A DNA stretch of 64,000 nt, taken from positions 62,001 to 126,000 of IMG/VR virus record IMGVR_UViG_3300005613_000002; one strand, written 5' to 3'. Shown one piece after another: positions 607-62,521 of this stretch (position 1 is its first letter; the number at the start of each line of letters is the position of its first letter). Both the position numbers and the translations under genes were made by a program. The notes below the pieces were generated by a model, which saw only the letters and a program-made list of their open reading frames with translations, ran no database searches and was not told the DNA's origin.

Positions 607-1341
607 TTATTTAATTTTATTTACAGTATCCCAACCACAATCAATACAATGAAAACAAACCTTATCTCTAACACCATAATGTGCGTTTTTTGTCCAAGAA
701 GCATTTTCATCATTACCAAATTTCATCCCAACTTTAAAATCTGAACTCCACAAATTTTTATTACTAATTGGATGTGGTGGGACAAATGTATTAATACCTC
801 CATACTTTTGTGCTAAATATGAAAACATAATATCTTCACCATTATCCCAAGTAAAAGGTTCTTCATACCATAAATATTTTGCCCATTCTTGTCTAAAAAA
901 CCAAGCATGACCAACTAAATCTACACGTTTTGTTTTATTTAATTGTTCACCATTCCATCCAATTTTATCGAAAGGTAAATATGATTTCCCTTTAATAATA
1001 ACACCACTACCACCAAGAATACCATTTGTTTCAGGATTTTCAATTGTTTCAAGACAATTCTTTAACCAATCTTTTTGTGGTATTGTATCATCATCAAACA
1101 TCGCAACATATGGAGTTTTCAATAATAATGGAACTGTAAATCTTCCAAAAAATTTAGTATTCCAATTACACGTATATGTTTTTATTTCTTTATCTTTTGG
1201 AAGATATTGTCCAACATCACTTTTATTATACCAAACATGAATATTTTCACTCTTTACTTCAATTGATTGATCTTTAATTGCTTGAATCTGTTGTTCAAGT
1301 GTGTGTGGTCTTTTATAAACATTTAATATTACACTTACCAT
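607..1341 (-). CDS. GT-A (family 2-like) glycosyltransferase
   Basis: N-terminal VSVILNVYKRP strand; YVAMFDDD DxD motif; GEDI motif. Confidence 0.8.
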   Translation of the reverse strand: MVSVILNVYKRPHTLEQQIQAIKDQSIEVKSENIHVWYNKSDVGQYLPKDKEIKTYTCNWNTKFFGRFTVPLLLKTPYVAMFDDDTIPQKDWLKNCLETIENPETNGILGGSGVIIKGKSYLPFDKIGWNGEQLNKTKRVDLVGHAWFFRQEWAKYLWYEEPFTWDNGEDIMFSYLAQKYGGINTFVPPHPISNKNLWSSDFKVGMKFGNDENASWTKNAHYGVRDKVCFHCIDCGWDTVNKIK

Positions 1342-2336
1342 AATTTACCTATATATTTTTGAGTATATACACCACCTTGCCCATCAATTCTAACATCACC
1401 ATGTAATTTTGAATCACCATTACCATCATGATAAACTAACGAATTTTCAGTTCTATATATCTCGTTATTTAAATAACCAATTGCGTCACCAATTTGAGTC
1501 CAAGCACGAACAGGGACTCCAGCTTTACAAACTTCATCAGCATTAACCTCAAGCATTTTATATTCCATAAACTCAATTACATCAATATCAATTAATGCAA
1601 TTCCATCAACAAAATGCTTATTTGACCACCAACTTTCGAATTCAGATGTTTCATTAAATGACCATAAATGTGGTGCTATCGCCATTATATTGCTGTTTTT
1701 TTCTTTTTTATTAAAAAATAAATCTGTTAATACATTTAAGAAATCTTTTGATAATATAAAATCATCATCCATCTGTAATACAGCATGACATTTTACTTCT
1801 TTTAAAATTTCCCACATCTGATTATAACAATACCAATGCAATACTTTTCCATTTGGTTTTTCATTTTTTATATAATGAATATTAGGATAAATATTAAGTA
1901 AATTATCATATCTTTCATCATCAGAACCATCATTTAATAATACTAATTTAAATGTATATTTTGTTGGTTCATTATATAATTGTGAAATAATTCTTTCTAC
2001 TTTTTCATATCTATTATATGATGGAATACATATTACAACATCAAAATCAACAAATGCTTTTTTTTGATATGGTGTTGGCATTAAGTTAACAACAACATCA
2101 TTTTTTATTTCACCCCTAAATTCTTTTTGAATTCTAATACCTTCCCTTCTTTTATTTCGTAAAAAAGGATTGGGTTGTTCATTCTTTAAAATTGGGATAG
2201 GTTTAGATTTATCTCCAAAAATTCTCCTACGATTTCTTTCATTCATGTTGTTCTTTTTTTCGATATACAAATTTTTATCATGTCTATGTTGTATCTTTTT
2301 AAGTATTAGTTCTTTTTTGTCAATTTTTTTTCTCAT
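1335..2336 (-). CDS. GT2 glycosyltransferase with basic N-terminal extension
   Basis: VVICIPSYNR, LLNDGSDD and LQMDDD motifs; about 90-aa K/R-rich N-terminus. Confidence 0.8.
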   Translation of the reverse strand: MRKKIDKKELILKKIQHRHDKNLYIEKKNNMNERNRRRIFGDKSKPIPILKNEQPNPFLRNKRREGIRIQKEFRGEIKNDVVVNLMPTPYQKKAFVDFDVVICIPSYNRYEKVERIISQLYNEPTKYTFKLVLLNDGSDDERYDNLLNIYPNIHYIKNEKPNGKVLHWYCYNQMWEILKEVKCHAVLQMDDDFILSKDFLNVLTDLFFNKKEKNSNIMAIAPHLWSFNETSEFESWWSNKHFVDGIALIDIDVIEFMEYKMLEVNADEVCKAGVPVRAWTQIGDAIGYLNNEIYRTENSLVYHDGNGDSKLHGDVRIDGQGGVYTQKYIGKLW

Positions 2337-2360
2337 AATTATAACTATATATTTAAATAG

Positions 2361-2987
2361 TTATAAAGAATGTTTTCGTCTTAATGCTGCTAATCCACTA
2401 TCTGTTCCTTTAGATGTTATACCTGAGTCAAGATAATAGGCATAAAATTTAAGATTTGGAACTAACACACCTTTTCCTCCATTTTTCACAATTGTTAACC
2501 AAATATCCCAATCTTGTAATCTTTTTAAATTTTCATCAAACATTGGAAAATTATCTCTCCTGATTAAAGACATTGTTGAAATATAATTCATTCCTTTTAA
2601 CACTTGTGCATTAAATGGTCTTGATGGAATTTGAAAATTACCATGCATAGGATGTGATTCTGGATGTAATACAATACCATGATAGCCAGTATATGAAAAT
2701 GCTGCTGTTTGATCTTTTATTAGCTTTTCATATAATGATTTAATGTAATTTTTCGGTAATAAAATATCATCATCACAGAAGAATACAAAAGGTTGTGTAG
2801 ATTTTTTAAATCCATCATTTCTTTTCTTTGGTGCTGTACCTTCATTATCATTAATAATAATTTCCATTACATCATTCGCTTCGATTAATGGTAAGACCAT
2901 ATTTGTGAAAAAATCCCTTCTACTTTTACTTAAAGGCACAATAACACTAATTGGTAATCCTTCTTCTACTTTATCTACTTTTATCAT
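2361..2987 (-). CDS. GT2 glycosyltransferase
   Basis: ISVIVP, KRNDG, FVFFCDDD and LQDWDIW motifs. Confidence 0.85.
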   Translation of the reverse strand: MIKVDKVEEGLPISVIVPLSKSRRDFFTNMVLPLIEANDVMEIIINDNEGTAPKKRNDGFKKSTQPFVFFCDDDILLPKNYIKSLYEKLIKDQTAAFSYTGYHGIVLHPESHPMHGNFQIPSRPFNAQVLKGMNYISTMSLIRRDNFPMFDENLKRLQDWDIWLTIVKNGGKGVLVPNLKFYAYYLDSGITSKGTDSGLAALRRKHSL

Positions 2988-3673
2988 TCTTCATAATTTA
3001 ATGGTAAATCATTTTTATATTTTTCAGCAAATTGCTTTCTATTTACTTCCCATTGCTCATTAGTCATACCTACTGACTTATGTAATATTCTAATATCAGT
3101 GGTTACACCAATATTACAACCATCTAAATAATTAGGTATGCAAAATGATAGATCATATAAATGAAAACCATTAAAATCTTCATCAAATTTATTTTCAATA
3201 TTATTACAATCAACAGCCATAAATAAACCATCAACAAGAACAACTGGTTTAATATATCCTGCAACAGGTTTTGCATATTCATTCACCCATGTATTAATAC
3301 CATCAGTATGTTCTACAACACCATACATTTTAGACCTATCATTCCACCACACACCATTTTCACCAAGATGTGGACTTCCAGCAACACCAATAATATCGAA
3401 ATCAAAATTATTAAATTTATTTAATAATAATTTACCCCAATTTTTAGTTTTAAATACAATATCATTATGACAAAACACCATAATTGCATCACTATTATTA
3501 TATTCACCTATTGCTTTGTTATAAATTTCTGTTAAACTATATTGATTAAAATTTTGATAACCATGAACAGTACATTTAACTTTACCAACAGTTTCTAAAA
3601 CATGATGATTAAATTTATGATTTTCTTCTTCAGTAAGATGTGAAGAATAAATTACAATTATATTATTTTTCAT
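2984..3673 (-). CDS. Glycosyltransferase-like protein (Glyco_tranf_2_5 type)
   Basis: SLTEIYNKAI, VFCHNDI, IIGVAG, VDGLFMA and FDEDFNGFHLYD motifs. Confidence 0.8.
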   Translation of the reverse strand: MKNNIIVIYSSHLTEEENHKFNHHVLETVGKVKCTVHGYQNFNQYSLTEIYNKAIGEYNNSDAIMVFCHNDIVFKTKNWGKLLLNKFNNFDFDIIGVAGSPHLGENGVWWNDRSKMYGVVEHTDGINTWVNEYAKPVAGYIKPVVLVDGLFMAVDCNNIENKFDEDFNGFHLYDLSFCIPNYLDGCNIGVTTDIRILHKSVGMTNEQWEVNRKQFAEKYKNDLPLNYEE

Positions 3674-13634: not shown

Positions 13635-14468
13635 ATGAATATATCAGTAATAATTCCAGTTCATAAATATGATGATAAAATTTCAACATATTTAAATAGT
13701 GTAATTGAATCAATAACAAAAAATGTAGGTGTAACTGAATTACCTCAAGTAATTATTGTTTATCCACCAGATATTGAAAAAGAAATTATAGGATTTAGAG
13801 ATAGTCAAGTCCGAAAATATGGTGATAAATTTTCTGAAGCTAAATATACTTTAGTGAAAAATGAAGATAAAACTGATTATCAATCACAGGTAAATTTAGG
13901 TGTTGAATATGTAAGCACTGATTATTTTTCAGTAATTGAATTTGATGATGAATTTAGTACCACTTATTTTAAAAATGTTGAACAGCATATAAACACATAT
14001 CAAGATGTTGATATTTTCTTATCAATGATAATTGAGGTTAATGATAAAAACGAAGGTATGAAATTAACTAATGAAACCGTATGGGCGCAACAATTTGTTG
14101 GTGAAAATGGTGAAATGGGTTATTTGAATGCAAAATCATTACAACAATATACAGATTTTAAATTATCTGGTGCTGTAATAAAAAAATCAGAATTTGAAAA
14201 TATTGGTAAATATAAATCAAATATAAAACTATCATTTATGTATGAGTTGTTGTTAAGGGCATTAAATAATGCGTGTAAAATATATACGATACCTAAAATC
14301 GGATATAAACATTTAGCAACAAGACCAGATAGTTTATTTGGTGAATATTCTAAATCAATGTCAATGAATGAAAGAAAATTTTGGTTTGATACAGCTAAGA
14401 ATGAGGCTAATTTTATTAATGATAGGGTTATTGATACATCACGTATAACTAAACAAATTGTTACATAA
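13635..14468 (+). CDS. GT2-like glycosyltransferase
   Basis: ISVIIPVH, QVNLGV, YFSVIEFDD motifs. Confidence 0.7.
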   Translation: MNISVIIPVHKYDDKISTYLNSVIESITKNVGVTELPQVIIVYPPDIEKEIIGFRDSQVRKYGDKFSEAKYTLVKNEDKTDYQSQVNLGVEYVSTDYFSVIEFDDEFSTTYFKNVEQHINTYQDVDIFLSMIIEVNDKNEGMKLTNETVWAQQFVGENGEMGYLNAKSLQQYTDFKLSGAVIKKSEFENIGKYKSNIKLSFMYELLLRALNNACKIYTIPKIGYKHLATRPDSLFGEYSKSMSMNERKFWFDTAKNEANFINDRVIDTSRITKQIVT

Positions 14469-18547: not shown

Positions 18548-19339
18548 ATGGATATTCAATTAGAAATACCAACCGAGTTATTTACGTCATTTAACGAGGT
18601 TAAATATTATGATGAACCACATAAATATTATGTAGGTAATAAAGAATTGGTTTCAGTTACAACACTTCTACATAAATATCAAGAAGAATTTGATGAAGAC
18701 TATTGGTCTGAATATAAAAGTAACCAATTTGGGATAAAAAAGCACCACGTTTTAAGAGCATGGGACTTTATTAATAAAAAAGGTACAATTAAAGGTTCAG
18801 CAATTCATGATTATACTGAAAATTTATTCATTAATAAAAAATTTGAATACCCAAGACAAAAAATATTTAATGAATTTGGTTTTGACCCTGTTACTATTGA
18901 ATATGAAATAACAAAGAAACATGTTGATAAATTTTATTCTGATTCGTATGGTAAATTAATTCCAATTAAAACTGAATTAGTTGTTTATGATAAAATTGCA
19001 CTTATTGGTGGAATGGTTGATATGTTATTTTATAATGTAAGAGCTGGTGAGTTTCAAATTTTTGACTGGAAAACAAATAAGAATTTTACAAATTCAACTA
19101 ATAGAAGATTAAAAAATAATTTATATGTTTTAAATGATTCTGATTTAACAATATATTCATTACAATTAGGATTATATAAATATATAATTGAAAAATATAC
19201 ATCAATTAAATTAGGAAAATCATATTTAGTATGGTTTTCACATAATAATCCAACATATAAAATAATTGAAACTAAAGATTTAACATATTTTGTTGATATT
19301 GTAATACAAAATAGAATTAATGAAATTAAAGTAGTTTAA
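18548..19339 (+). CDS. PD-(D/E)XK exonuclease (RecB/Cas4-like)
   Basis: SVTT, GSAIH, E..V, GMVD, IFDWKTNK and YSLQLGLY motifs; host-type promoter TTG-N19-TATTTTTG at 18513-18542. Confidence 0.8.
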   Translation: MDIQLEIPTELFTSFNEVKYYDEPHKYYVGNKELVSVTTLLHKYQEEFDEDYWSEYKSNQFGIKKHHVLRAWDFINKKGTIKGSAIHDYTENLFINKKFEYPRQKIFNEFGFDPVTIEYEITKKHVDKFYSDSYGKLIPIKTELVVYDKIALIGGMVDMLFYNVRAGEFQIFDWKTNKNFTNSTNRRLKNNLYVLNDSDLTIYSLQLGLYKYIIEKYTSIKLGKSYLVWFSHNNPTYKIIETKDLTYFVDIVIQNRINEIKVV

Positions 19340-20012
19340 ATTTTTCACGTTTACGACTTAAAGAAATATTAATTGAATCATTATATAAATATTTATGAAA
19401 TGTATTTAAATCTTTTTTATTTGTTATTCTTATTTGTGATGAAAACCCACCTCTACTAGTTATTATTCTTTCTTTATATTTATTAATTCCAATTTCATTA
19501 AATAATTTAATAATAAAATACCAATCTTGTTCTTTATGTCCAGTAAATGCTATTGAATGATGTCCTTTAGGAATTATTGTAACAGAACCATCACCATCAA
19601 AAAAACCTCTAAACCATAATTGCTTTTCAATATTATTTAATTTTGATAATATCTTATCTGGTGATTTTATTTTATTTCTATAATTATTTTCAATTAAAAA
19701 CTCCCCTAATTCTCTATTTGAAGTCCAATTTACTTCAAGAATATTATTTTTTTTAGTAAATGACCCTTGATTTCTTGTCTCATAAATTCCCCAATCACCA
19801 GTGTTAAGAAAAATTTTTCTAAAAAAAATATTATCTTCTTTTTTTGTTGAATGTTTAATTTGTGGTGTTTTTGCTTTATTATTAGCAAAAATGACACTAC
19901 CATCTGCCCATAATAACCCAAGTAAATATGCGTGTGATAATGTTTCCACATTAATAAAGTCAATTGCTGATACTTTTTTTATTTTCATTTGAAATTTGTT
20001 TACGATTCCCAT
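19326..20012 (-). mobile_element. Free-standing double-motif LAGLIDADG homing endonuclease
   Basis: AYLLGLLWADGS and WFRGFFDGDGS motifs; C-terminal LSRKREKF. Confidence 0.85.
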
Positions 20013-29069: not shown

Positions 29070-29358
29070 ATTTAGTGTTAATGAGTATTATAATTTAGTA
29101 ATACTATTAAAACAAGCATTATTATTTTATGCTGATAAAGAAAATTATGGTGAATCTAAAAGTTCACCAATATTAATTGATAGAGGTTCACAAGCGCAAT
29201 TTGTTCTTAAAAGTATTACTGATTTAGAAGAAATGTATATGGATACAATAAAAGACCATAAAAATTTATCAGAATCAGAAATGTTAAAAGATTTTAGTGC
29301 TAATGATGAAAATGAATCATTGGCGAATTTAATTAAACAATTTAAAGAAGAAAAATAA
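29056..29358 (+). CDS. Hypothetical protein
   Basis: 100-aa ORF in the operon. Confidence 0.65.
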   Translation: MMMIKFSVNEYYNLVILLKQALLFYADKENYGESKSSPILIDRGSQAQFVLKSITDLEEMYMDTIKDHKNLSESEMLKDFSANDENESLANLIKQFKEEK

Positions 29359-29429
29359 TGAAGATTAAAATTATCATGTGTTTATTGTTATTTTCAATAA
29401 CACCGAGTATTTATTCTAAAATAAATATT

Positions 29430-30065
29430 ATGGTTGAAAAAAAATGTTTAAATCCAGAATGTAATAAATTATTTTCAGTTATTAATAGTAGAAAAGATTC
29501 TGCAAAATTTTGTTGTAAGGAATGTGCTAATTTAAATTTAACAGGAAAACCAAATACAATTTGTACTGAATGCAATAAACCATTTCATTTAAAAGAATCA
29601 TCAAAAAAAAGATATAAAAGAACTCATGGTTATTTTTGTTCAACTAAATGTGTTGCTGATTTTAGAAAAAAAGCATATCTTGGAGAGAATAACCCTAATT
29701 TTAGAAATACTACTCATGACGGTGGTTATTTATTAAGTAATTTACCTAAATTTGGTAGAATAAAATTACATCATAAAGTTGTTTTTGAATTACTTAAAAT
29801 TGATAAAATACCTGAAAAATATTGTGTGCATCATAGAGATTGTAATATAAATAATAATGATGAAGAAAATTTAGTTTTATTAACATTAAGTAATCATAGA
29901 TGGTTACATAAAAATTTTGGTAACGCTACATTATGGGCATATTCGCAAAATAAGATTTCATTATACGAATTATGTGATTGGTGTAAGAATCCAGAAAAAG
30001 CAATGAGATTATTACCATTAAATATTATTAAACAAAAAGAAAATATTCATGAAATTATTAGTTAA
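29430..30065 (+). mobile_element. HNH homing endonuclease with Zn-ribbon repeats
   Basis: CxxC pairs, GENNPNF (NUMOD-like) and VHHRDCNINNNDEENL..H..LH HNH motif; own late motif at 29407 suggests start 29430. Confidence 0.85.
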
Positions 30066-32317: not shown

Positions 32318-32869
32318 TTAATTCCCTTTTGTTTCATATAAAAATGGAATAACATCCTCTTTTACTGGAACACCAGTGATTCGTTTCCAATATGGTTTGA
32401 ATCCACCAATTGTTTTCTTTGTTTCATCAGTAATATTATTAGCACTTTCAACTTCATAATATCTATTTTTTTCACCACTCATATTATATTCAACAATATC
32501 ACCACGATCAATTTCAATTTTTTTTTCTTCTAATTCTTTAAGATAAACACCGAAACTAATAATACCAGTATCATCACGACTAATCCCACCTTGAGCAGCA
32601 CCATAATATTCTTGTTGCCCATTATCAATATTAACCATTACGCTTATGCGCACTGGTTTCATAAACTTTTTATCTTTAGCTTTTGCTTGACCATATAGTG
32701 AATGAGATTTAGTATCAATTATGTTTATTTTATGAATAATAACTTCCTGTGCATTATCTGTTTGTAAGAAGTTTCGACCATACATAACATCTAAATCAAA
32801 CGAATTATCAGTCATAAATAATCCAAATCTATCATCTTCCAAATTTATTACTTGTTTTTTCTTTCTCAT
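32318..32869 (-). CDS. Head completion/neck protein (gp14-like)
   Basis: SLYGQA..KKF..PV, GDIV...YYEV pattern; in an operon with the gp13-like gene. Confidence 0.6.
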   Translation of the reverse strand: MRKKKQVINLEDDRFGLFMTDNSFDLDVMYGRNFLQTDNAQEVIIHKINIIDTKSHSLYGQAKAKDKKFMKPVRISVMVNIDNGQQEYYGAAQGGISRDDTGIISFGVYLKELEEKKIEIDRGDIVEYNMSGEKNRYYEVESANNITDETKKTIGGFKPYWKRITGVPVKEDVIPFLYETKGN

Positions 32870-33354
32870 TATGAAATTATTTTATACCCATCACTTTCAA
32901 CATTATTTAAATCTTTAATAAAATTTCGATATTGTTTATTTACAGCATTTGGTGGAACATTAGACCTATCAATACCAGTTTCAATATCATTACGAATTCT
33001 TTCATTACATATTTCAGGGTCAACATTGAATATTTTCGCAAATGCATCAAAATCTAATTCAGTGTTTTGTTTAATATAATCTAACATTCGTTTTCTATGA
33101 GAAGAATTAACATTAGTAGCATCAAATATCACACTATTTCCATCATTTATTGCTTTAATTGTTCTTTGAAAAGCAATTGGAAATACATCTTTATTTCTTG
33201 ATTGGTTTGAAACATCACCAGTTAATTCTCTACGAATATCATCAGGCGAAATAATTTCATACCCTAAATCTACAAGAGATTTAATCCATCTGGACTTTCC
33301 ACTTCCAGAAATACCAATAGGAATTATAAATTTTGGTTTAAAATTTTCTATCAT
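32869..33354 (-). CDS. Polynucleotide-kinase-like P-loop kinase (AAA_33)
   Basis: GISGSGKS, SPDDIR, DATN..R and R..VP motifs. Confidence 0.8.
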   Translation of the reverse strand: MIENFKPKFIIPIGISGSGKSRWIKSLVDLGYEIISPDDIRRELTGDVSNQSRNKDVFPIAFQRTIKAINDGNSVIFDATNVNSSHRKRMLDYIKQNTELDFDAFAKIFNVDPEICNERIRNDIETGIDRSNVPPNAVNKQYRNFIKDLNNVESDGYKIIS

Positions 33355-34053: not shown

Positions 34054-35175
34054 TTAAATTGGTATTATTGGGAACATTGGTGGTTGATAACCACGTTCTT
34101 TATTTACATTTTCAGCAATTTTTGCTCGTTTTTCAGTTAAATTAACTTGACTAATATTATCTAATTGTTCTAATATTTTCTTTTCAGTATCTTCTTTTAA
34201 TTTAGTACCTTCATCAAGTAAATGACGATAATCCATCGTTAATTGCTTTTCAGCAACACCAAGTTCACCAGTATAAAAACCTCTAATTCCACCGATTACC
34301 ATTTTTACTTTAGCAATCAAAAAATCTCTTATTTGTTGACGTGCAACATCATTTAAATTAGACCATTGTAACACTTTTGTTGGTGCATCAGATGGTAGTT
34401 TAACAATATCACTATTTTCTTCTAAACATTTATCTCTATCACCTTCACCATTAATATCATAATACCAATACCAAACCTTTCTACCACTACAATGTTTACC
34501 CCATGATGAACCAATTTCATGACGATCATTTGGCATAGGGTACAAATGTAACATTTTTTCGCCAGTCGCCAAACCTGTTATACGATATGTTAATGTTGAT
34601 TGTAAAACTCTCTGTTTCATTCTTCTGTCTTGTGCAGATAATAAAGTAGAAAATGTTGGTTGAACATATAATGCTGGTCTTCCTAAATATGACATTCCCA
34701 TCATTCCAGCACTCCAAGCATTCAATGCGAATGGGTCAACCAAACCACCATCAATTGGTGGTGGTGTTTCCCATAATACTTCATTAACTTCACGTCCTTT
34801 TGGAATAATATAATGTTGAGTGAATTCAGTAGTAGTAATAAAATCTCGTTTTAATTCCCAACCATAGGCAGATGGTGAATTAGTACCCAAGCCAACTTGT
34901 TTTGAGTAAGCATAAGTGAATGATTCCATGTATTTGTTTGATTTAGTTGTAAAAGCTGAAAGAAAATCACTATTTTCTTTATCTAAACCTTCCAAACCAA
35001 TCCATTGTTGTTGAATTAACCAATCATTTAGTATTGATGAATAATCTTCAACTACCATTTCTAAATATGAATCCATCATTTCATCCTTTAATTCGAAAGG
35101 TCTCAATGGAAAACCTAATTCATGTTTTATTTTTAGGTATAATTTATTTTTATCAACTGTTGTTATTAATGCCAT
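34054..35175 (-). CDS. Neck protein (gp13-like)
   Basis: IKHELGFP...EL..E N-terminus; AKVK..IG.IRG C-terminus; late motif at 35202. Confidence 0.75.
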   Translation of the reverse strand: MALITTVDKNKLYLKIKHELGFPLRPFELKDEMMDSYLEMVVEDYSSILNDWLIQQQWIGLEGLDKENSDFLSAFTTKSNKYMESFTYAYSKQVGLGTNSPSAYGWELKRDFITTTEFTQHYIIPKGREVNEVLWETPPPIDGGLVDPFALNAWSAGMMGMSYLGRPALYVQPTFSTLLSAQDRRMKQRVLQSTLTYRITGLATGEKMLHLYPMPNDRHEIGSSWGKHCSGRKVWYWYYDINGEGDRDKCLEENSDIVKLPSDAPTKVLQWSNLNDVARQQIRDFLIAKVKMVIGGIRGFYTGELGVAEKQLTMDYRHLLDEGTKLKEDTEKKILEQLDNISQVNLTEKRAKIAENVNKERGYQPPMFPIIPI

Positions 35176-55522: not shown

Positions 55523-56287
55523 TTAAATATTGAGTTCATCTAAACTTAATTCATTTTGTAGATAACCATTCTTTAATTCAACCATTTTTTCAAGATAACC
55601 AGTATTTCTTAACACTTTAAAAACTAGATTTTCAACAGAATATTCACCACCATTTTCTAATCCTGTTTGTCTATATTTTTTTATTTTATCTTTAATTTGT
55701 TCATATTTTTCTAACCAATTATCTTTATTTTTATTAGACTCTAAATCGTCAATAGCATTCATAAAATCTGCTGATTTTAATTTAATATTGGCAGTATCAA
55801 TATTGACAATTTTTTTTGTTGGTTTGTTAATCCATTGATTATTCATTAATGAATAGATTCCTGACGAATGATGCAATTCGCTTTTATCTTGAAAATATAG
55901 TTCAACATCATGCCCTTTTACTTGTATTGGAAGTTTTTCTTTCCATAATTGTTTTTTTAGTTTAAGGAAATCAGCAACAAATTCTTTATTTTCGGATATT
56001 TGTGAATAATCTAAAACAATATGAATATCTAAATCTGAATTTTCATTATAATTAAAGTTAGCCATACTACCAGTAAGTGTTATATCATTAAATTTTAAAT
56101 TTTCAACATTTGAAAACTCAATGAATCTTTTAGCATTAAGCAGTAATGTTTTTCTAACATCAGATTTAAGTTTATCATCTTCCCAAATAAGTGGAGATAG
56201 TTCATCATGTAATTGGATAGATGTTACATCAACACTATCAGGTTCAATCACTTCTTTAATGATATCACTAATGTTTATTTTATTCAT
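55523..56287 (-). CDS. Pol-beta-superfamily nucleotidyltransferase
   Basis: LTGSMANFNY...SDLDIHIV, VELY.QD and GEYSVENLVFK.LR motifs. Confidence 0.8.
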   Translation of the reverse strand: MNKINISDIIKEVIEPDSVDVTSIQLHDELSPLIWEDDKLKSDVRKTLLLNAKRFIEFSNVENLKFNDITLTGSMANFNYNENSDLDIHIVLDYSQISENKEFVADFLKLKKQLWKEKLPIQVKGHDVELYFQDKSELHHSSGIYSLMNNQWINKPTKKIVNIDTANIKLKSADFMNAIDDLESNKNKDNWLEKYEQIKDKIKKYRQTGLENGGEYSVENLVFKVLRNTGYLEKMVELKNGYLQNELSLDELNI

Positions 56288-60301: not shown

Positions 60302-60345
60302 AAATGAAAAATAATATAAATTTTTATTATTTTTTTTAAAAAGTA

Positions 60346-60375
60346 TTGTATTTATGATTTTAATGCGTATATTTG
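60346..60375 (+). promoter_or_regulatory. Host-type promoter (with overlapping late motif) for the leader/tRNA operon
   Basis: TTG-N19-TATATTTG; GTATTTAT at 60348-60355. Confidence 0.75.
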
Positions 60376-60406
60376 CATTATAATTTAGTGTTTAACAATT
60401 AGTATT

Positions 60407-60490
60407 ATGAAAAATTTAGTGAACATACAGCATCAACCCGTACAACATCCACAGGATATCGTTGAATGGGTAGATTATGTTCAAACTTAA
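60407..60490 (+). CDS. Attenuator leader peptide rich in Gln/His/Pro
   Basis: MKNLVNIQHQPVQHPQDIVEWVDYVQT*; 8 of 9 consecutive codons (60428-60454) are Q/H/P, matching the downstream tRNAs. Confidence 0.85.
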   Translation: MKNLVNIQHQPVQHPQDIVEWVDYVQT

Positions 60491-60520
60491 ATTTTTCCGA
60501 GAGAAGTTTTAATTTAGGGC

Positions 60521-60556
60521 AAAAAGTTCCATTCTATTTAGAGTGGAACTTTTTTT
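60521..60556 (+). terminator. Attenuator terminator upstream of the first tRNA
   Basis: AAAAAGTTCCATTCT-ATTT-AGAGTGGAACTTTTTTT; its 5' arm can alternatively pair with GAATGGG at 60464-60470. Confidence 0.85.
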
Positions 60557-60563
60557 GTTATAT

Positions 60564-60658
60564 CTGGGATTGAACGAGTGGTTGAAGTTACCAGCCTTGG
60601 AAACTGGTGAGGGCGATAAGATGGTTGTCCTCCGTGGGTTCGAACCCCACATCCCAGA
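60564..60658 (+). tRNA. tRNA-Pro(UGG) on a Ser-like class II scaffold
   Basis: Acceptor CTGGGAT/ATCCCAG, A73; anticodon arm CCAGC-CTTGGAA-ACTGG; 8-bp variable stem; T arm GTGGG-TTCGAAC-CCCAC. Confidence 0.8.
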
Positions 60659-60660
60659 CA

Positions 60661-60803
60661 AATGAATAATGGTAGTGTTAATATTATATATGGAGTAACT
60701 TGATGAATCCTTGAAGGAACGCTTGGTGAAAAATAGTAAAAGTATATAACAACAACACGCTAGTCGAAGATGACTGGAGTTATAGGCGAAAATCCTATTC
60801 ATT
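60661..60803 (+). ncRNA. tRNA-like structured ncRNA 1
   Basis: End pairing AATGA/TCATT; ATAATGGTA D-loop-like segment; long helix GTGTT..TTATATA/TATATAA..AACAC; hairpin CTAGTC/GACTGG; T-arm-like ATAGG-CGAAAAT-CCTAT. Confidence 0.55.
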
Positions 60804-60815
60804 GTTTATAAATAT

Positions 60816-60901
60816 GGTGATTGTTGCAGAGTGGTCAAATGCGCCAGATTGTGGTTCTGGTATCCGAAAGGATTTCGTGGGTTCGAAACCCATCATTCAC
60901 C
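60816..60901 (+). tRNA. tRNA-His(GUG) on a Tyr-like class II scaffold
   Basis: G-1:C73; anticodon arm CCAGA-TTGTGGT-TCTGG; variable arm ATCC-GAAA-GGAT. Confidence 0.85.
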
Positions 60902-60908
60902 CAAAAAT

Positions 60909-61021
60909 AATTAGTTACCCTGCTTGTTCCGTATGGGGTTATAAAAATACATCAATTAACGGAACTCATGATGGAGTCCTTGCCAAGAAAGTAGGATAAA
61001 GATGTTAGATATTAACTAATT
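60909..61021 (+). ncRNA. Structured ncRNA 2, possibly pseudoknotted
   Basis: Closing stem AATTAGTTA/TAACTAATT; GTTCCGT/ACGGAAC; TCCT/AGGA hairpin; loop ACATC can pair with GATGT. Confidence 0.5.
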
Positions 61022-61030
61022 TATAAATAT

Positions 61031-61105
61031 CGGGTAGTTATGCAGATGGCTATACAACGATGCCTTGGACGCATCGGTTCGCAGGTTCGAATCCTGCCTA
61101 TCCGA
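61031..61105 (+). tRNA. tRNA-Pro(UGG), atypical D arm, A37
   Basis: CGGGTAG/CTATCCG, A73; CGATGC-CTTGGAC-GCATCG; GCAGG-TTCGAAT-CCTGC. Confidence 0.75.
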
Positions 61106-61113
61106 CATAATAT

Positions 61114-61186
61114 AGAGTAGTAGCGCAGTTGGTAGCGTACTGCATTTGGGATGCAGGGGTCGCAGGTTCAAGTCCTGTCTACTCTA
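61114..61186 (+). tRNA. tRNA-Pro(UGG), class I, G37
   Basis: AGAGTAG/CTACTCT, A73; CTGCA-TTTGGGA-TGCAG; canonical D and T arms. Confidence 0.88.
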
Positions 61187-61188
61187 CT

Positions 61189-61260
61189 GTGTTAGTAGCA
61201 TAACTGGCTAATGCGCCACACTGTGAATGTGGAGAATAGGGTTCGAGTCCCTCTAACACC
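61189..61260 (+). tRNA. tRNA-His(GUG), class I, A37, 4-bp T stem
   Basis: GTGTTAG/CTAACAC, C73; CCACA-CTGTGAA-TGTGG; AGGG-TTCGAGT-CCCT. Confidence 0.8.
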
Positions 61261-61266
61261 CAACTT

Positions 61267-61350
61267 AGTCCTATGGTGGAATTGGTAAACACATCGTCCT
61301 TTGAAGGCGACACCCGAAAGGGTTTGTAGGTTCGAGTCCTACTAGGATTG
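61267..61350 (+). tRNA. tRNA-Gln(UUG) on a Leu-like class II scaffold
   Basis: AGTCCTA/TAGGATT, G73; D arm GTGGAATTGGTAAACAC; TCGTC-CTTTGAA-GGCGA; variable arm ACCC-GAAA-GGGT. Confidence 0.85.
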
Positions 61351-61383
61351 CAAAAGTGTGAAAAACATACTTTATTAAGACGA

Positions 61384-61471
61384 AAGAAGATTCAGAGATG
61401 GTTGACATTCATGTAACCAATAGCTCGATAATGGTAGGGTTATAGTGAAAAGTGATAATAATCTTCTTCCA
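61384..61471 (+). ncRNA. Structured ncRNA 3 ending in CCA
   Basis: Closing stem AAGAAGATT/AATCTTCTT + CCA; hairpin TGGTT-G-ACAT/ATGT-AACCA; ATAATGGTAG shared with ncRNA 1. Confidence 0.5.
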
Positions 61472-61505
61472 ATATGAAGTACAAGTATTGGATAGTCTTT
61501 TTTAT

Positions 61506-61580
61506 TGCCCATTGGTGTAATTGGCTAACACATCTGATTTTGATTCAGAAGACTTATAGGTTCGAATCCTATATGGGCAA
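61506..61580 (+). tRNA. tRNA-Gln(UUG), class I, A37
   Basis: TGCCCAT/ATGGGCA; TCTGA-TTTTGAT-TCAGA; ATAGG-TTCGAAT-CCTAT. Confidence 0.9.
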
Positions 61581-61633
61581 CTTTTCTCTTGCTACTTATT
61601 ATTTTTTTAATTATATTTATGAAAAATATAATT

Positions 61634-61832: not shown

Positions 61833-62117
61833 ATGATTTACAAACTAAAACATGTTCCAACTGGTTTATATTATCAACCACATAGACATCGAGGTAGCAA
61901 TTTAAGTAAAAGAGGTAAAATTTATCAAACTTCTACTCATGGTCTATCATCAGCATTTAAAAATAAAAGAGCAACATTTACTGTTTATTGTGAAAAAGAT
62001 AGTCGCATATATAAATTATGTAATAATATTTTAAATTTCGAAGATTATAGATTTTCATATAATCAAGTAAAAGCTGAAACAAAAGTAAGTGATTGGATAA
62101 TTGAAGAAATTAAATAA
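61833..62117 (+). CDS. Hypothetical protein
   Basis: 94 aa, YKLKHVPTGLYY...LSKRGKIY. Confidence 0.65.
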   Translation: MIYKLKHVPTGLYYQPHRHRGSNLSKRGKIYQTSTHGLSSAFKNKRATFTVYCEKDSRIYKLCNNILNFEDYRFSYNQVKAETKVSDWIIEEIK

Positions 62118-62122
62118 AAACA

Positions 62123-62521
62123 ATGAAATATAATTTATTCTTAGATGATGTTAGAAACCCGATTGATTGTGTATACTACATGTATACACCAATATATACT
62201 AGTGTTGACTGGGTGATAGTTAGAGATTATAATTCTTTTATTAAAATAATTAAAGAAAATGGTTTACCTGAAATAATCTCCTTCGATCATGATTTATCTG
62301 ATGAACATTATGACCCAAAAATGTATCATGAATCATATGATGAATTATATGATTCATTTAAAGAAAAAACTGGTTACGAATGTGCTAAATGGTTGGTAGA
62401 TTATTGTATTGATAATAATGAATTTCTACCAAAAAAAATATTAGTACATTCAATGAATCCTATTGGTAGACGAAATATTGAGTCTTATTTCGAATCATAT
62501 AATAAATCATTAAAATTATAG
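62123..62521 (+). CDS. Cyclic-phosphate-processing receiver (cREC)-domain protein
   Basis: LFLDD.R.P, ISFDHDL, KTGYECAKWL and VHSMNP.G motifs. Confidence 0.75.
   Translation: MKYNLFLDDVRNPIDCVYYMYTPIYTSVDWVIVRDYNSFIKIIKENGLPEIISFDHDLSDEHYDPKMYHESYDELYDSFKEKTGYECAKWLVDYCIDNNEFLPKKILVHSMNPIGRRNIESYFESYNKSLKL

Follow-up and report, generated by a model that had tools for sequence, protein, structure and literature searches.

Long-arm tRNA genes with proline, histidine and glutamine anticodons in the tRNA array of a jumbo phage

The window analyzed here is a stretch of 64,000 nucleotides (nt) from the IMG/VR virus record IMGVR_UViG_3300005613_000002 (positions 62,001 to 126,000 of that record), and it hosts an array of seven tRNA genes on the + strand (60564-61581). 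Three of these genes, with anticodons for proline, histidine and glutamine, encode tRNAs whose D arm has a 3-bp stem and an 11-nt loop and whose variable (V) region forms a hairpin; we refer to these long-arm tRNAs as ProV, HisV and GlnV. Long variable arms in bacteria are normally restricted to tRNA-Ser, -Leu, -Tyr and -Sec (PMC7609411, PMC9976931). We propose that ProV, HisV and GlnV are functional phage tRNAs that combine a class II-type core with the identity marks of Pro, His and Gln, and that they would act as cognately charged, structurally distinct decoders. We assign to this reading a probability of roughly 55%.

Architecture and identity marks of the three tRNAs

All seven genes of the array are predicted by ARAGORN and lie above the gathering score of the Rfam family RF00005 (29 bits). 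ProV (tRNA-Pro(UGG), 60564..60658, + strand) measures 95 nt to A73 and scores 46.7 bits (E 4e-8). HisV (tRNA-His(GUG), 60817..60901, + strand, with G-1 at 60816) scores 45.3 bits (E 1e-7), and GlnV (tRNA-Gln(UUG), 61267..61350, + strand) scores 54.7 bits (E 3e-10). Short-arm tRNAs with the same three anticodons are interleaved among and after them. The V regions of ProV, HisV and GlnV are 26, 16 and 15 nt long with stems of 9, 4 and 4 bp, which places them in class II (at least 10 nt and a stem-loop). Their D arms are also of class II type, with a 3-bp stem, unpaired positions 13:22 and an enlarged loop of Ser, Tyr or Leu type. We did not take the 3-bp D stem alone as proof of class II origin, since several class I tRNAs share it, including E. 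coli tRNA-Gln. The acceptor/T stack is 7/5 bp in all three according to both ARAGORN and Rfam, with no 8/4 or 9/3 split. The anticodon loops have 7 nt and U33, the T loops, G18G19 and the Levitt pair are intact, and CCA is not encoded in the window copies. Thermodynamic folding of HisV alone and of GlnV alone returns the five-helix cloverleaf, and the fold of HisV includes G-1:C73 as an eighth pair.

We compared the three tRNAs with reference genes of E. coli K-12 (serT, tyrT/V, leuT, leuW, proM, hisR and glnU/W). ProV has the D loop GAGTGGTTGAA, closed by the 3-bp D stem, the anticodon arm CCAGC-CUUGGAA-ACUGG and the pair G15:C48. Its V stem of approximately 9 bp directly abuts C48, as in serT, while C1:G72 and A73 are as in proM, and its anticodon loop differs from that of serT (CUUGAAA) at position 36 alone. 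HisV has the D loop GAGTGGTCAAA and the V region U-AUCC-GAAA-GGAU-UUC, in which two unpaired bases precede C48 and which ends in UUC, the same as tyrT; the genomic G-1 faces C73 (60901), and the acceptor stem bears a U5.U68 mismatch. GlnV has the D arm GUG-GAAUUGGUAAA-CAC, the V region C-ACCC-GAAA-GGGU-UU, in which one unpaired base precedes U48, and A15:U48, A1:U72, G2.U71 and G73. The corresponding E. coli D loops are GAGCGGTTGAA (serT), GAGCGGCCAAA (tyrT) and GAATTGGTAGA (leuT). They match ProV, HisV and GlnV at 10/11, 9/11 and 10/11 positions, respectively, and the 3' tails of the E. coli V arms have 0, 2 and 1 bases. Because serT, tyrT and leuT show closely matching loops and the same tails, the labels of Ser-, Tyr- and Leu-type that the initial annotation gave to the D loops and V-arm geometry hold. 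The features it had read from the letters are all present: at 60564, a Ser-type D loop, an anticodon arm near Ser(UGA), no unpaired base, UGG, C1:G72 and A73; at 60816, a Tyr-type D loop, two unpaired bases, GUG and G-1:C73; and at 61267, a Leu-type D arm, one unpaired base, UUG and G73.

Bacterial identity sets have been compiled (PMC9976931) for Pro (A73, G72, G15:C48, G49, G35, G36 and G37, with G37 and its methylation being identity elements in E. coli), His (G-1, C73 and GUG), Ser (G73, C72, G2:C71, C11:G24, a large variable region and G30:C40), Tyr (A73, G34 and U35), Leu (A73 plus A15:U48, G18G19 and A20a) and the indirect pathway of Gln (U1:A72). From the Pro set, ProV has A73, G72 (in C1:G72), G15:C48, G49, G35 and G36, and lacks G37. 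Of the Ser elements, only the large variable region and G30:C40 remain, and with A73, G72, U2:A71 and A11:U24 ProV does not carry Ser identity. The His set is complete in HisV (G-1:C73 and GUG), which has C73 and G36 and shares only G34 and U35 with the Tyr set, so that Tyr identity is not present. Further elements of Gln identity in E. coli are G2:C71, G3:C70, G73, G10 and U35. The window copy of GlnV has A1:U72 (a weak pair in inverted orientation), G2.U71, U3:A70, G73, G10 and U35. Its G73 departs from Leu identity, but A15:U48, G18G19 and A20a are present. The discriminators of Ser, Tyr and Leu (G73, A73 and A73) are absent from ProV, HisV and GlnV of the window, respectively.

Families, ancestry and spread of long arms

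The search for homologues in phage metagenomes that had been suggested with the initial annotation returned families of seven distinct ProV, at least 13 distinct HisV (plus two more in contig L084) and nine distinct GlnV sequences. The six ProV sequences besides the window copy lie in the independent viral contigs L037, L047, L050, L054, L057 and L082, always in syntenic Pro-His-Gln arrays. One HisV member lies in the cultured Microbacterium phage Cece, where it was already annotated as an 86-nt tRNA-His, and some GlnV members lie in uncultured phages of 0.5-0.6 Mb. The host settings of the long-arm families are diverse (Microbacterium phage, 0.6-Mb uncultured phages and marine contigs). Sequences of ProV and HisV type come from viral contigs, metagenomic contigs and a single cultured phage, Cece. 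Exact-pattern scans of 185,579 bacterial and archaeal species-representative genomes, in which only pattern-matching sequences are visible, returned no match of ProV or HisV type.

Covariation was counted in six of the seven ProV sequences and in 13 HisV sequences. In the ProV alignment, 99.4% of the cells are paired and double changes occur at 12 of the 26 pairs, as compared to a mean of 4.3 in shuffled alignments, none of which reached this value (0/500). Acceptor pairs 2-7 of ProV all covary, while C1:G72 and A73 remain constant. Over the whole family, C1:G72, A73, G35 and G36 are found in 7/7 sequences, as are A37 and C32. The anticodon loops of the family read CUUGGAA or CUUGGAC, and those of the canonical tRNA-Pro in the same arrays read UUUGGGA. 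In HisV, all four pairs of the V stem covary and are 100% paired, the stem is capped by a GNRA loop and the UUC tail is nearly invariant (one UAC). An encoded G-1, G1:C72 and C73 are found in 13/13 sequences. The nine divergent GlnV sequences keep 63/63 pairs of the acceptor stem, 44/45 of the anticodon stem and 45/45 of the T stem. The pair 1:72 of GlnV is U:A in six sequences and A:U in three, G2 is found in 9/9, and N73 is G in four, U in three and A in two. Class II tRNA-Leu genes in the same loci, instead, have G1 in 14/16 and A73 in 16/16 cases. In both the ProV and HisV families, covariation keeps the cloverleaf, V stem included, far beyond what is expected by chance. On this evidence of sequence conservation, ProV, HisV and GlnV are confirmed as real conserved tRNA genes whose fold is under purifying selection. 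All three unite class II-type architecture with the marks of Pro, His or Gln at the anticodon and the acceptor end, as initially reported, and the marks are invariant within the families, with GlnV conserving a weak 1:72 pair.

It had also been claimed that both anticodon and acceptor identity were moved onto foreign bodies. We compared the body of each tRNA (positions 8-65, V region excluded) segment by segment with the E. coli genes and with approximately 230 tRNAs of the loci retrieved; with approximately 50 body positions and approximately 45 informative columns, this comparison is a weak guide to ancestry. The claim is supported for ProV, whose body is 0.71 identical to serT versus 0.59 to proM. 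The nearest bodies of ProV are those of other class II-shaped tRNAs, and the closest classes do not include class I tRNA-Pro. Its acceptor stem is Pro-like, and the anticodon stem of its relatives (CUGGU/GCCAG) is that of a phage tRNA-Ser(UGA). ProV fits a Ser(UGA)-like body in which position 36 and the acceptor end would have been switched to Pro. The claim does not extend to HisV and GlnV. HisV is nearest to His (identity 0.75-0.84, with 0.75 to E. coli hisR, versus 0.65 to tyrT), as are its acceptor stem, anticodon arm and T arm to class I tRNA-His, and HisV has the unusual U5.U68/U6.U67 acceptor mismatches in common with the class I tRNA-His that related phages carry. For GlnV, identity to phage class I tRNA-Gln (0.73-0.78) slightly exceeds that to tRNA-Leu (0.70-0.75). 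The GlnV D arm does not discriminate between the two, as it matches that of the phage's own tRNA-Leu(UAA) at 18/20 positions and that of its own class I tRNA-Gln at 17/20.

HisV and GlnV therefore seem better described as members of their own isotypes that carry a class II core, composed of arm and D loop. The geometry of this core is as in the phage's own tRNA-Tyr and tRNA-Leu, and most likely the histories of the three tRNAs differ. In that tRNA-Tyr, the D loop reads AAGTGGTTAAA and the V region U-GC-UUCG-GC-UUC, a layout that is the same as in HisV. When the pattern-selected families are set aside, the D-loop motif RAGYGGYYRAA is found in Ser and Tyr only among the approximately 230 tRNAs. 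Best BLAST matches to annotated tRNA-Ser and tRNA-Leu were discounted as proof of Ser or Leu ancestry, because an ungapped long arm favors class II subjects, and the segment-wise comparison without the V region is more cautious.

Long arms are not limited to these three isotypes. The same phage has an 84-nt long-arm tRNA-Trp(CCA) approximately 8 kb past the end of the window and 15 kb past GlnV (L085:16277-16360). Its D loop, GAGTGGTTAAA, is of class II type, its V region reads U-CUC-GAAA-GAG-UUC, and it has A1:U72 and G73. Other fetched arrays contain long-arm tRNAs for Asn (four), Met (four) and Trp (two), as well as for Ile, Thr, Glu and Val, together with short-arm tRNA-Leu (eight) and tRNA-Tyr (two). 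In the array of phage Cece (L003, OP068343.1 84187-87134), the 86-nt long-arm tRNA-His and a 90-nt long-arm tRNA-Met lie beside tRNA-Tyr and tRNA-Leu (CAG, CAA and GAG) of 73-75 nt without long arms, and hence the class has switched in both directions. An additional 88-nt long-arm tRNA-like gene with encoded CCA (L082:11151-11238) has an apparent 6-nt loop and an ambiguous anticodon, which ARAGORN calls Lys or stop. The initial view that exactly three scaffolds, Ser, Tyr and Leu, had been reassigned to Pro, His and Gln is contradicted by these short-arm and long-arm isotypes. In particular, a one-to-one mapping fails because of the long-arm tRNA-Trp in the same phage and of the Asn, Met, Ile and Thr versions in related arrays. 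The phenomenon is a general loosening of the partition between class I and class II in the tRNA arrays of large phages.

A bolder interpretation, which is possible but doubtful in our judgement, is that large phages systematically build a second, class II-shaped set of tRNAs, in which a common core is placed on many class I isotypes with cognate identity and the shape marks self from non-self. The core module would consist of a V hairpin capped by GNRA or UUCG and of a GAGUGGUYRAA-type D loop, and it might have been applied to Pro, His, Gln and Trp here and to Asn, Met, Ile and Thr elsewhere. With similar reserve, we can imagine that such decoders would still be charged by host synthetases and yet be told apart by the tRNA-directed immunity of the host or by the phage's own enzymes that degrade host tRNAs.

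The short-arm partners of the window differ from ProV, HisV and GlnV at positions 32, 37 and 38 of the anticodon loop. Two of them are tRNA-Pro(UGG) genes on the + strand: a canonical class I gene (61114..61186, ARAGORN; Rfam 67.8 bits) with the loop UUUGGGA (G37), A1:U72 and A73, and an irregular gene (61031..61105, ARAGORN; Rfam 34.4 bits) with an irregular D arm, the loop CUUGGAC and A37 rather than the near-universal G37. Relatives of the irregular gene are found at L083:4500-4575 and L057:1491-1565, with loops CUUGGAC or CUUGGAA; the copy in L057 has G at position 33. Decoders of the A37 type for tRNA-Pro(UGG) therefore occur both with and without the long arm. The class I tRNA-Gln(UUG) (61506..61580, + strand, ARAGORN; Rfam 64.8 bits) has U1:A72, A73 and the loop UUUUGAU. 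The class I-shaped tRNA-His(GUG) (61189..61260, + strand, ARAGORN and Rfam) is preceded by T at 61188, so that no G-1 is encoded, and has a 4-bp T stem (7/4 stack). Its His identity is probably impaired, and the gene may be decaying or may encode a tRNA that is independent of G-1. In L047, a relative of this gene has G-1 together with a T stem of 5 bp. In other phages, short-arm GUG tRNAs with C1:G72, A or U at position 73 and no G-1 (L072:2434-2508, L073:3957-4031 and L075:1202-1276) have conserved C2.U71 and U3.U70 mismatches and adjoin a HisV with full His identity. HisV is the only GUG tRNA of this phage with an encoded G-1. Because the short-arm GUG tRNAs here and in L072, L073 and L075 are without His marks, HisV is probably the working tRNA-His and not a spare.

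Proposed cognate charging and competing interpretations

In the reading that we favor, ProV, HisV and GlnV would be transcribed along with the rest of the array and matured by the host RNase P and, because no CCA is encoded, by the host CCA-adding enzyme. ProV would be charged by the host prolyl-tRNA synthetase (ProRS), HisV by the histidyl-tRNA synthetase (HisRS) and GlnV either by the glutaminyl-tRNA synthetase (GlnRS) or through the route of glutamyl-tRNA synthetase (GluRS) and GatCAB. They would decode the CCA, CAU/CAC and CAA codons preferred by the phage, in which CCA accounts for 66% of Pro, CAU for 90% of His and CAA for 92% of Gln codons. They could form a second set of decoders beside the short-arm paralogs, which have the same anticodons on other bodies and with other loop positions, and this set would keep working when host enzymes attack tRNAs of ordinary shape or fail to mature them. 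Cognate charging, use in translation and the protective role are what we infer from comparing sequences. The strongest argument for cognate charging is that the end positions are invariant amid free covariation in the pairs beside them.

Several observations weigh against this interpretation. The identity rules were worked out in E. coli and a small number of model species, and they are extrapolated to the host of this phage. ProV has A37 in 7/7 sequences in place of G37, an element of Pro identity in E. coli, and ProRS may therefore charge it poorly; it also keeps G30:C40 and a long arm of Ser geometry, the main handle of the seryl-tRNA synthetase (SerRS). Serylation of ProV remains the most serious alternative to cognate charging, because the arm is the main SerRS handle and because Pro identity depends in part on G37 and its methylation. 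The window copy of GlnV, with A1:U72 in place of U1:A72, also has G2.U71, U3:A70 and the Leu element A15:U48, and N73 varies within the family. The uniformity of the D loop in the ProV and HisV families is partly circular, because both families were mostly gathered with patterns in which the D loop was fixed, although the members found independently have the same type of loop with small variations: BLAST gave the one in Cece, the neighboring RNA element led to that in L082, and the V and T arms led to those in L084. As for the protective role, we know of no bacterial tRNA-targeting nuclease that reads the variable region. A long arm could even attract attack, because at least one toxin, MenT3, reportedly prefers long-arm tRNA-Ser (PMC11541572).

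Serylation of ProV would be one instance of a broader mistranslation, in which the class II body sets the charging, GlnV is leucylated and HisV is tyrosylated, and Ser, Leu and Tyr are inserted at CCA, CAA and CAY codons. We hold such miscoding, as well as its conceivable purpose of diversifying phage proteins or poisoning host proteins, to be quite unlikely. It is true that SerRS and the leucyl-tRNA synthetase (LeuRS) ignore the anticodon and that the long arm is the main SerRS determinant (PMC9976931, PMC7590224), and a natural precedent exists in the nev-tRNAs of nematodes, whose charging follows the class II body rather than the anticodon (PMC3333845). ProV has the V geometry, D loop and G30:C40 of Ser, its anticodon loop is that of Ser(UGA) except for position 36, and the Pro element G37 is absent; GlnV has the Leu elements A15:U48, G18G19 and A20a, and A73 in two members of the family. 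However, the acceptor ends fit the anticodons: ProV has C1:G72 and A73 in 7/7 sequences and none of G73, C72, G2:C71 and C11:G24, HisV has G-1:C73 in 13/13 and never A73, and GlnV has A:U or U:A at 1:72 in 9/9, as opposed to the G1 and A73 of co-resident tRNA-Leu. Invariance amid a covarying stem is what selection for recognition by the cognate synthetase predicts. Moreover, the bodies of HisV and GlnV are nearest to His and Gln, and a proteome-wide change from Pro to Ser at the phage's own commonest Pro codon would be costly. A weaker departure from our interpretation, which we rate as unlikely, is that long-arm and short-arm paralogs are tuned to different synthetase or maturation rules and widen the range of hosts or physiological states, with the arm being incidental or stabilizing. 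The rules in question might be, for instance, those of G-1-dependent and G-1-independent HisRS, GlnRS and GluRS/GatCAB, the two types of ProRS, or TrmD dependence. The GUG pairs do differ exactly in the His marks (G-1:C73 in HisV as compared to no G-1 and A/U73 in the short-arm tRNAs of L072, L073 and L075), tRNA-Pro(UGG) exists in one G37 and two A37 versions, and N73 of GlnV is G, U or A. Nearly every isotype is present as divergent duplicates in this phage, and, as noted above, the phages that carry the families have very different hosts. Such compatibility sets would nevertheless leave unexplained the strict conservation of the arm, with its covarying stems and fixed tails, and the class II-type D loop that always accompanies it, and they overlap with our interpretation instead of excluding it.

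Roles outside translation appear very unlikely to us, whether as decoys or sponges that bind tRNA-directed nucleases, modifying toxins or synthetases of the host, or as RNAs with a regulatory or processing function in the array. Mukai et al. have described irregular G-1 tRNAs that become charged yet are not used in translation (PMC5389517). Each long-arm tRNA of the window is followed by a spacer of 130-155 nt, one of which holds a conserved structured RNA, and both the conserved U.U mismatches in the acceptor stem of HisV and the A37 of ProV would be odd in efficient decoders. The canonical 7-nt anticodon loops with U33, the intact T loops, G18G19, Levitt pair and 7/5 stack, and anticodons that fit the codon preference of the phage point instead towards decoding, and the conserved identity positions would be needless in a nuclease decoy. 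HisV is the only GUG tRNA with His identity here and in several other phages, and hence is probably needed for decoding. Hardly credible is the notion that the long-arm genes are decaying or neutral duplicates, either pseudogenes or annotation artifacts derived from insertions into tRNA genes. Degenerate members do occur in phage arrays, such as the tRNA-His at 61189 (no G-1, 4-bp T stem) and the tRNA-Pro at 61031 (34 bits). The long-arm genes, in contrast, reach Rfam scores of 45-55 bits, show compensatory changes in every stem over seven, 13 and nine divergent sequences with invariant identity positions, and are carried by unrelated phages from different environments.

We found no description of phage families of long-arm tRNA-Pro, -His or -Gln in a search of the literature. 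The nearest known things are the nev-tRNAs, the allo-tRNAs and the type I tRNA-Leu of Streptomyces. Nev-tRNAs are class II tRNAs with Gly or Ile anticodons (PMC3333845), but they are eukaryotic and their Leu-type body sets the charging with leucine, whereas the acceptor marks of the phage tRNAs follow the anticodon. Allo-tRNAs and the 8/4 tRNA-Ser and tRNA-His (Mukai et al. 2017, PMC5389517) resemble the phage tRNAs in having irregular long arms and non-Ser anticodons and in deriving from metagenomes and phage tRNA clusters, and the same study covers irregular tRNA-His species in phages. They differ in their 8/4 or 9/3 stack, tRNA-Sec-like D arm and Ser identity (G73 or U73), while ProV, HisV and GlnV have a normal 7/5 stack, ordinary D loops with G18G19 and, in the window copies, non-Ser discriminators (with GlnV having G73). 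The 8/4 tRNA-His has A73 and no G-1 (PMC5389517), as opposed to G-1:C73 in HisV.

Engineered tRNAs are also informative. Long-arm tRNAs have been given His, Ala or Tyr identity, and a class II chassis with G-1:C73 is histidylated and active in translation in E. coli (Mukai 2020, PMC7590224), so that HisV looks like a natural counterpart. These molecules are, however, synthetic and built on a 9/3 allo-tRNA chassis, and they need a bulge in the V stem to reject SerRS, whereas the phage V stems are regular helices (PMC7590224). The type I short-arm tRNA-Leu of Streptomyces demonstrates that tRNAs of either class can be substrates of a synthetase for the same amino acid (PMC6614811), although the switch goes in the opposite direction, by loss of the arm, and in a cellular genome. 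Bacterial tRNA-Ser, -Leu and -Tyr themselves have the D-loop types and V-arm tails of ProV, GlnV and HisV, but their discriminators are absent from the phage tRNAs.

The long-arm families of phages, clearly under purifying selection, break the Ser/Leu/Tyr/Sec rule for Pro, His, Gln and other isotypes, while keeping cognate acceptor marks. Should the predicted charging take place, ProRS, HisRS and GlnRS would tolerate a class II body in nature, the phage tRNAs would offer natural scaffolds for orthogonal-tRNA engineering, and they could be used to test how far anti-phage tRNases and toxins read the shape of the tRNA as compared to the anticodon loop. A tRNA-Pro with A37 also bears on the role of m1G37 in maintaining the reading frame. 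The question is directly testable, because HisV is present in the cultured Microbacterium phage Cece.

Neighboring elements, RNA repair genes and the phage

The gap between ProV and HisV hosts a structured non-coding RNA of approximately 150 nt (60663..60816, + strand), for which our covariance model R1 returns 147-172 bits in five phage contigs. It always lies between an A37-type tRNA-Pro and a tRNA-His, and its structure comprises a closing helix and three hairpins that show compensatory changes, along with extended single-stranded stretches that do not vary, for instance GGAACGCUUGGUGAAAAAU. Rfam gives no match to it at E<=1. It recalls the stable RNAs C and D of the T4 tRNA cluster. In the spacer after HisV (60903..61030, + strand), the first approximately 90 nt share about 80% identity with a spacer in the array of LR756504.1. 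The matching spacer (L002:1501-1587) comes after a 79-nt tRNA-Val in a 636-kb uncultured phage, and a few compensatory pairs are predicted between the two. We rejected the idea that the three spacers are copies of one element, as the covariance model of the first spacer finds its five copies only and neither of the other two spacers. A strong terminator-like hairpin with a T run (60521..60554, + strand) ends 9 nt before ProV, within a conserved, probably non-coding region of approximately 180 nt. The upstream region (60302-60563, + strand) is 72-75% identical over approximately 170-186 nt to the related contigs L037, L047, L050, L054 and L057. A small open reading frame (ORF) upstream of ProV was considered and dropped; the region is probably non-coding because indels in the relatives break the reading frames.

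Several genes of this phage may act in RNA repair. Approximately 540 nt downstream of the array lies a gene with a cREC (cyclic-phosphate-processing receiver-like) domain (62123..62521, + strand; PF20274, 84 bits, E 1.2e-23). The cREC family is predicted to heal RNA ends, and the domain has been proposed to process 2',3'-cyclic phosphates (PMC7824862). When we searched for syntenic loci with the cREC protein as the neighboring gene, only the same contig was returned. A P-loop kinase similar to polynucleotide kinases (32869..33354, - strand; AAA_33, E 1.8e-20; phrog_505 polynucleotide kinase, E 3e-15) is possibly an enzyme that heals RNA 5' ends. Outside the window, the same phage has an RNA ligase gene of T4 Rnl1 type (PF09511, 66 bits), directly followed by two divergent tRNA-Tyr and two divergent tRNA-Lys genes (L086:11044-13253). 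A ribonucleotide reductase gene and a TnpB/Cas12f-like gene (L086:17111-18409) are found further on in L086. The 373-amino-acid ORF 34054-35175 was rejected as an RNA ligase, with no support from Pfam, PHROG or PDB.

Most isotypes are present as divergent duplicates in this phage, and its genome fits that of a phage that expects attack on tRNAs and would answer by repair and replacement, a setting in which structurally distinct decoders would be useful. That phage tRNAs and RNA repair counter tRNA-cleaving defenses is a published view (PMC7824862; PMC11555353, PMC12409363). The same reports describe phage replacement tRNAs, isoacceptors unlike those of the host that sustain translation under anticodon-nuclease attack, which the long-arm tRNAs may resemble in this respect (PMC11555353, PMC12409363; PMC7824862). 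The Pnkp/Rnl1 tRNA repair paradigm of T4 is a further likeness, with an Rnl1-type ligase, a kinase and a cREC gene in this genome. In the published replacement-tRNA cases, escape is reportedly not attributed to a changed tRNA class. The RNA repair genes make it plausible, though no more than that, that the long-arm shape would provide escape from tRNA-targeting toxins, as the initial annotation suggested.

The stretch has a G+C content of 27% and is densely coding, with the standard code and TAA stops. Recoding of stop codons was rejected, as the ORFs are long and dense, the stops are nearly all TAA with no pattern of read-through, and the tRNAs are not suppressors. In the 321.6-kb contig, T4-like structural genes (sheath, baseplate, prohead protease, portal, major head protein and large terminase) identify the phage as a jumbo myovirus by gene content. 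They also rule out a crAss-like phage, an idea that came from the first BLAST matches to crAss tRNA-Pro. LAGLIDADG-type and HNH-type homing endonuclease genes (window 19326-20012, - strand, and 29358-30065, + strand) lie among structural and nucleotide-metabolism genes. Family-2 glycosyltransferase genes form a cluster of four (607-3673, - strand), with a fifth at 13635-14468 (+ strand). A 254-amino-acid protein (55523-56287, - strand) bears a weak signature of nucleotidyltransferases of the Pol-beta fold and a strong match to phrog_36119, a PHROG annotated as function unknown. Elsewhere in the same phage, a 74-nt tRNA (L062:11862-11935) with the loop GUUAGAG is called 'Stop|Leu', its anticodon loop being ambiguous.

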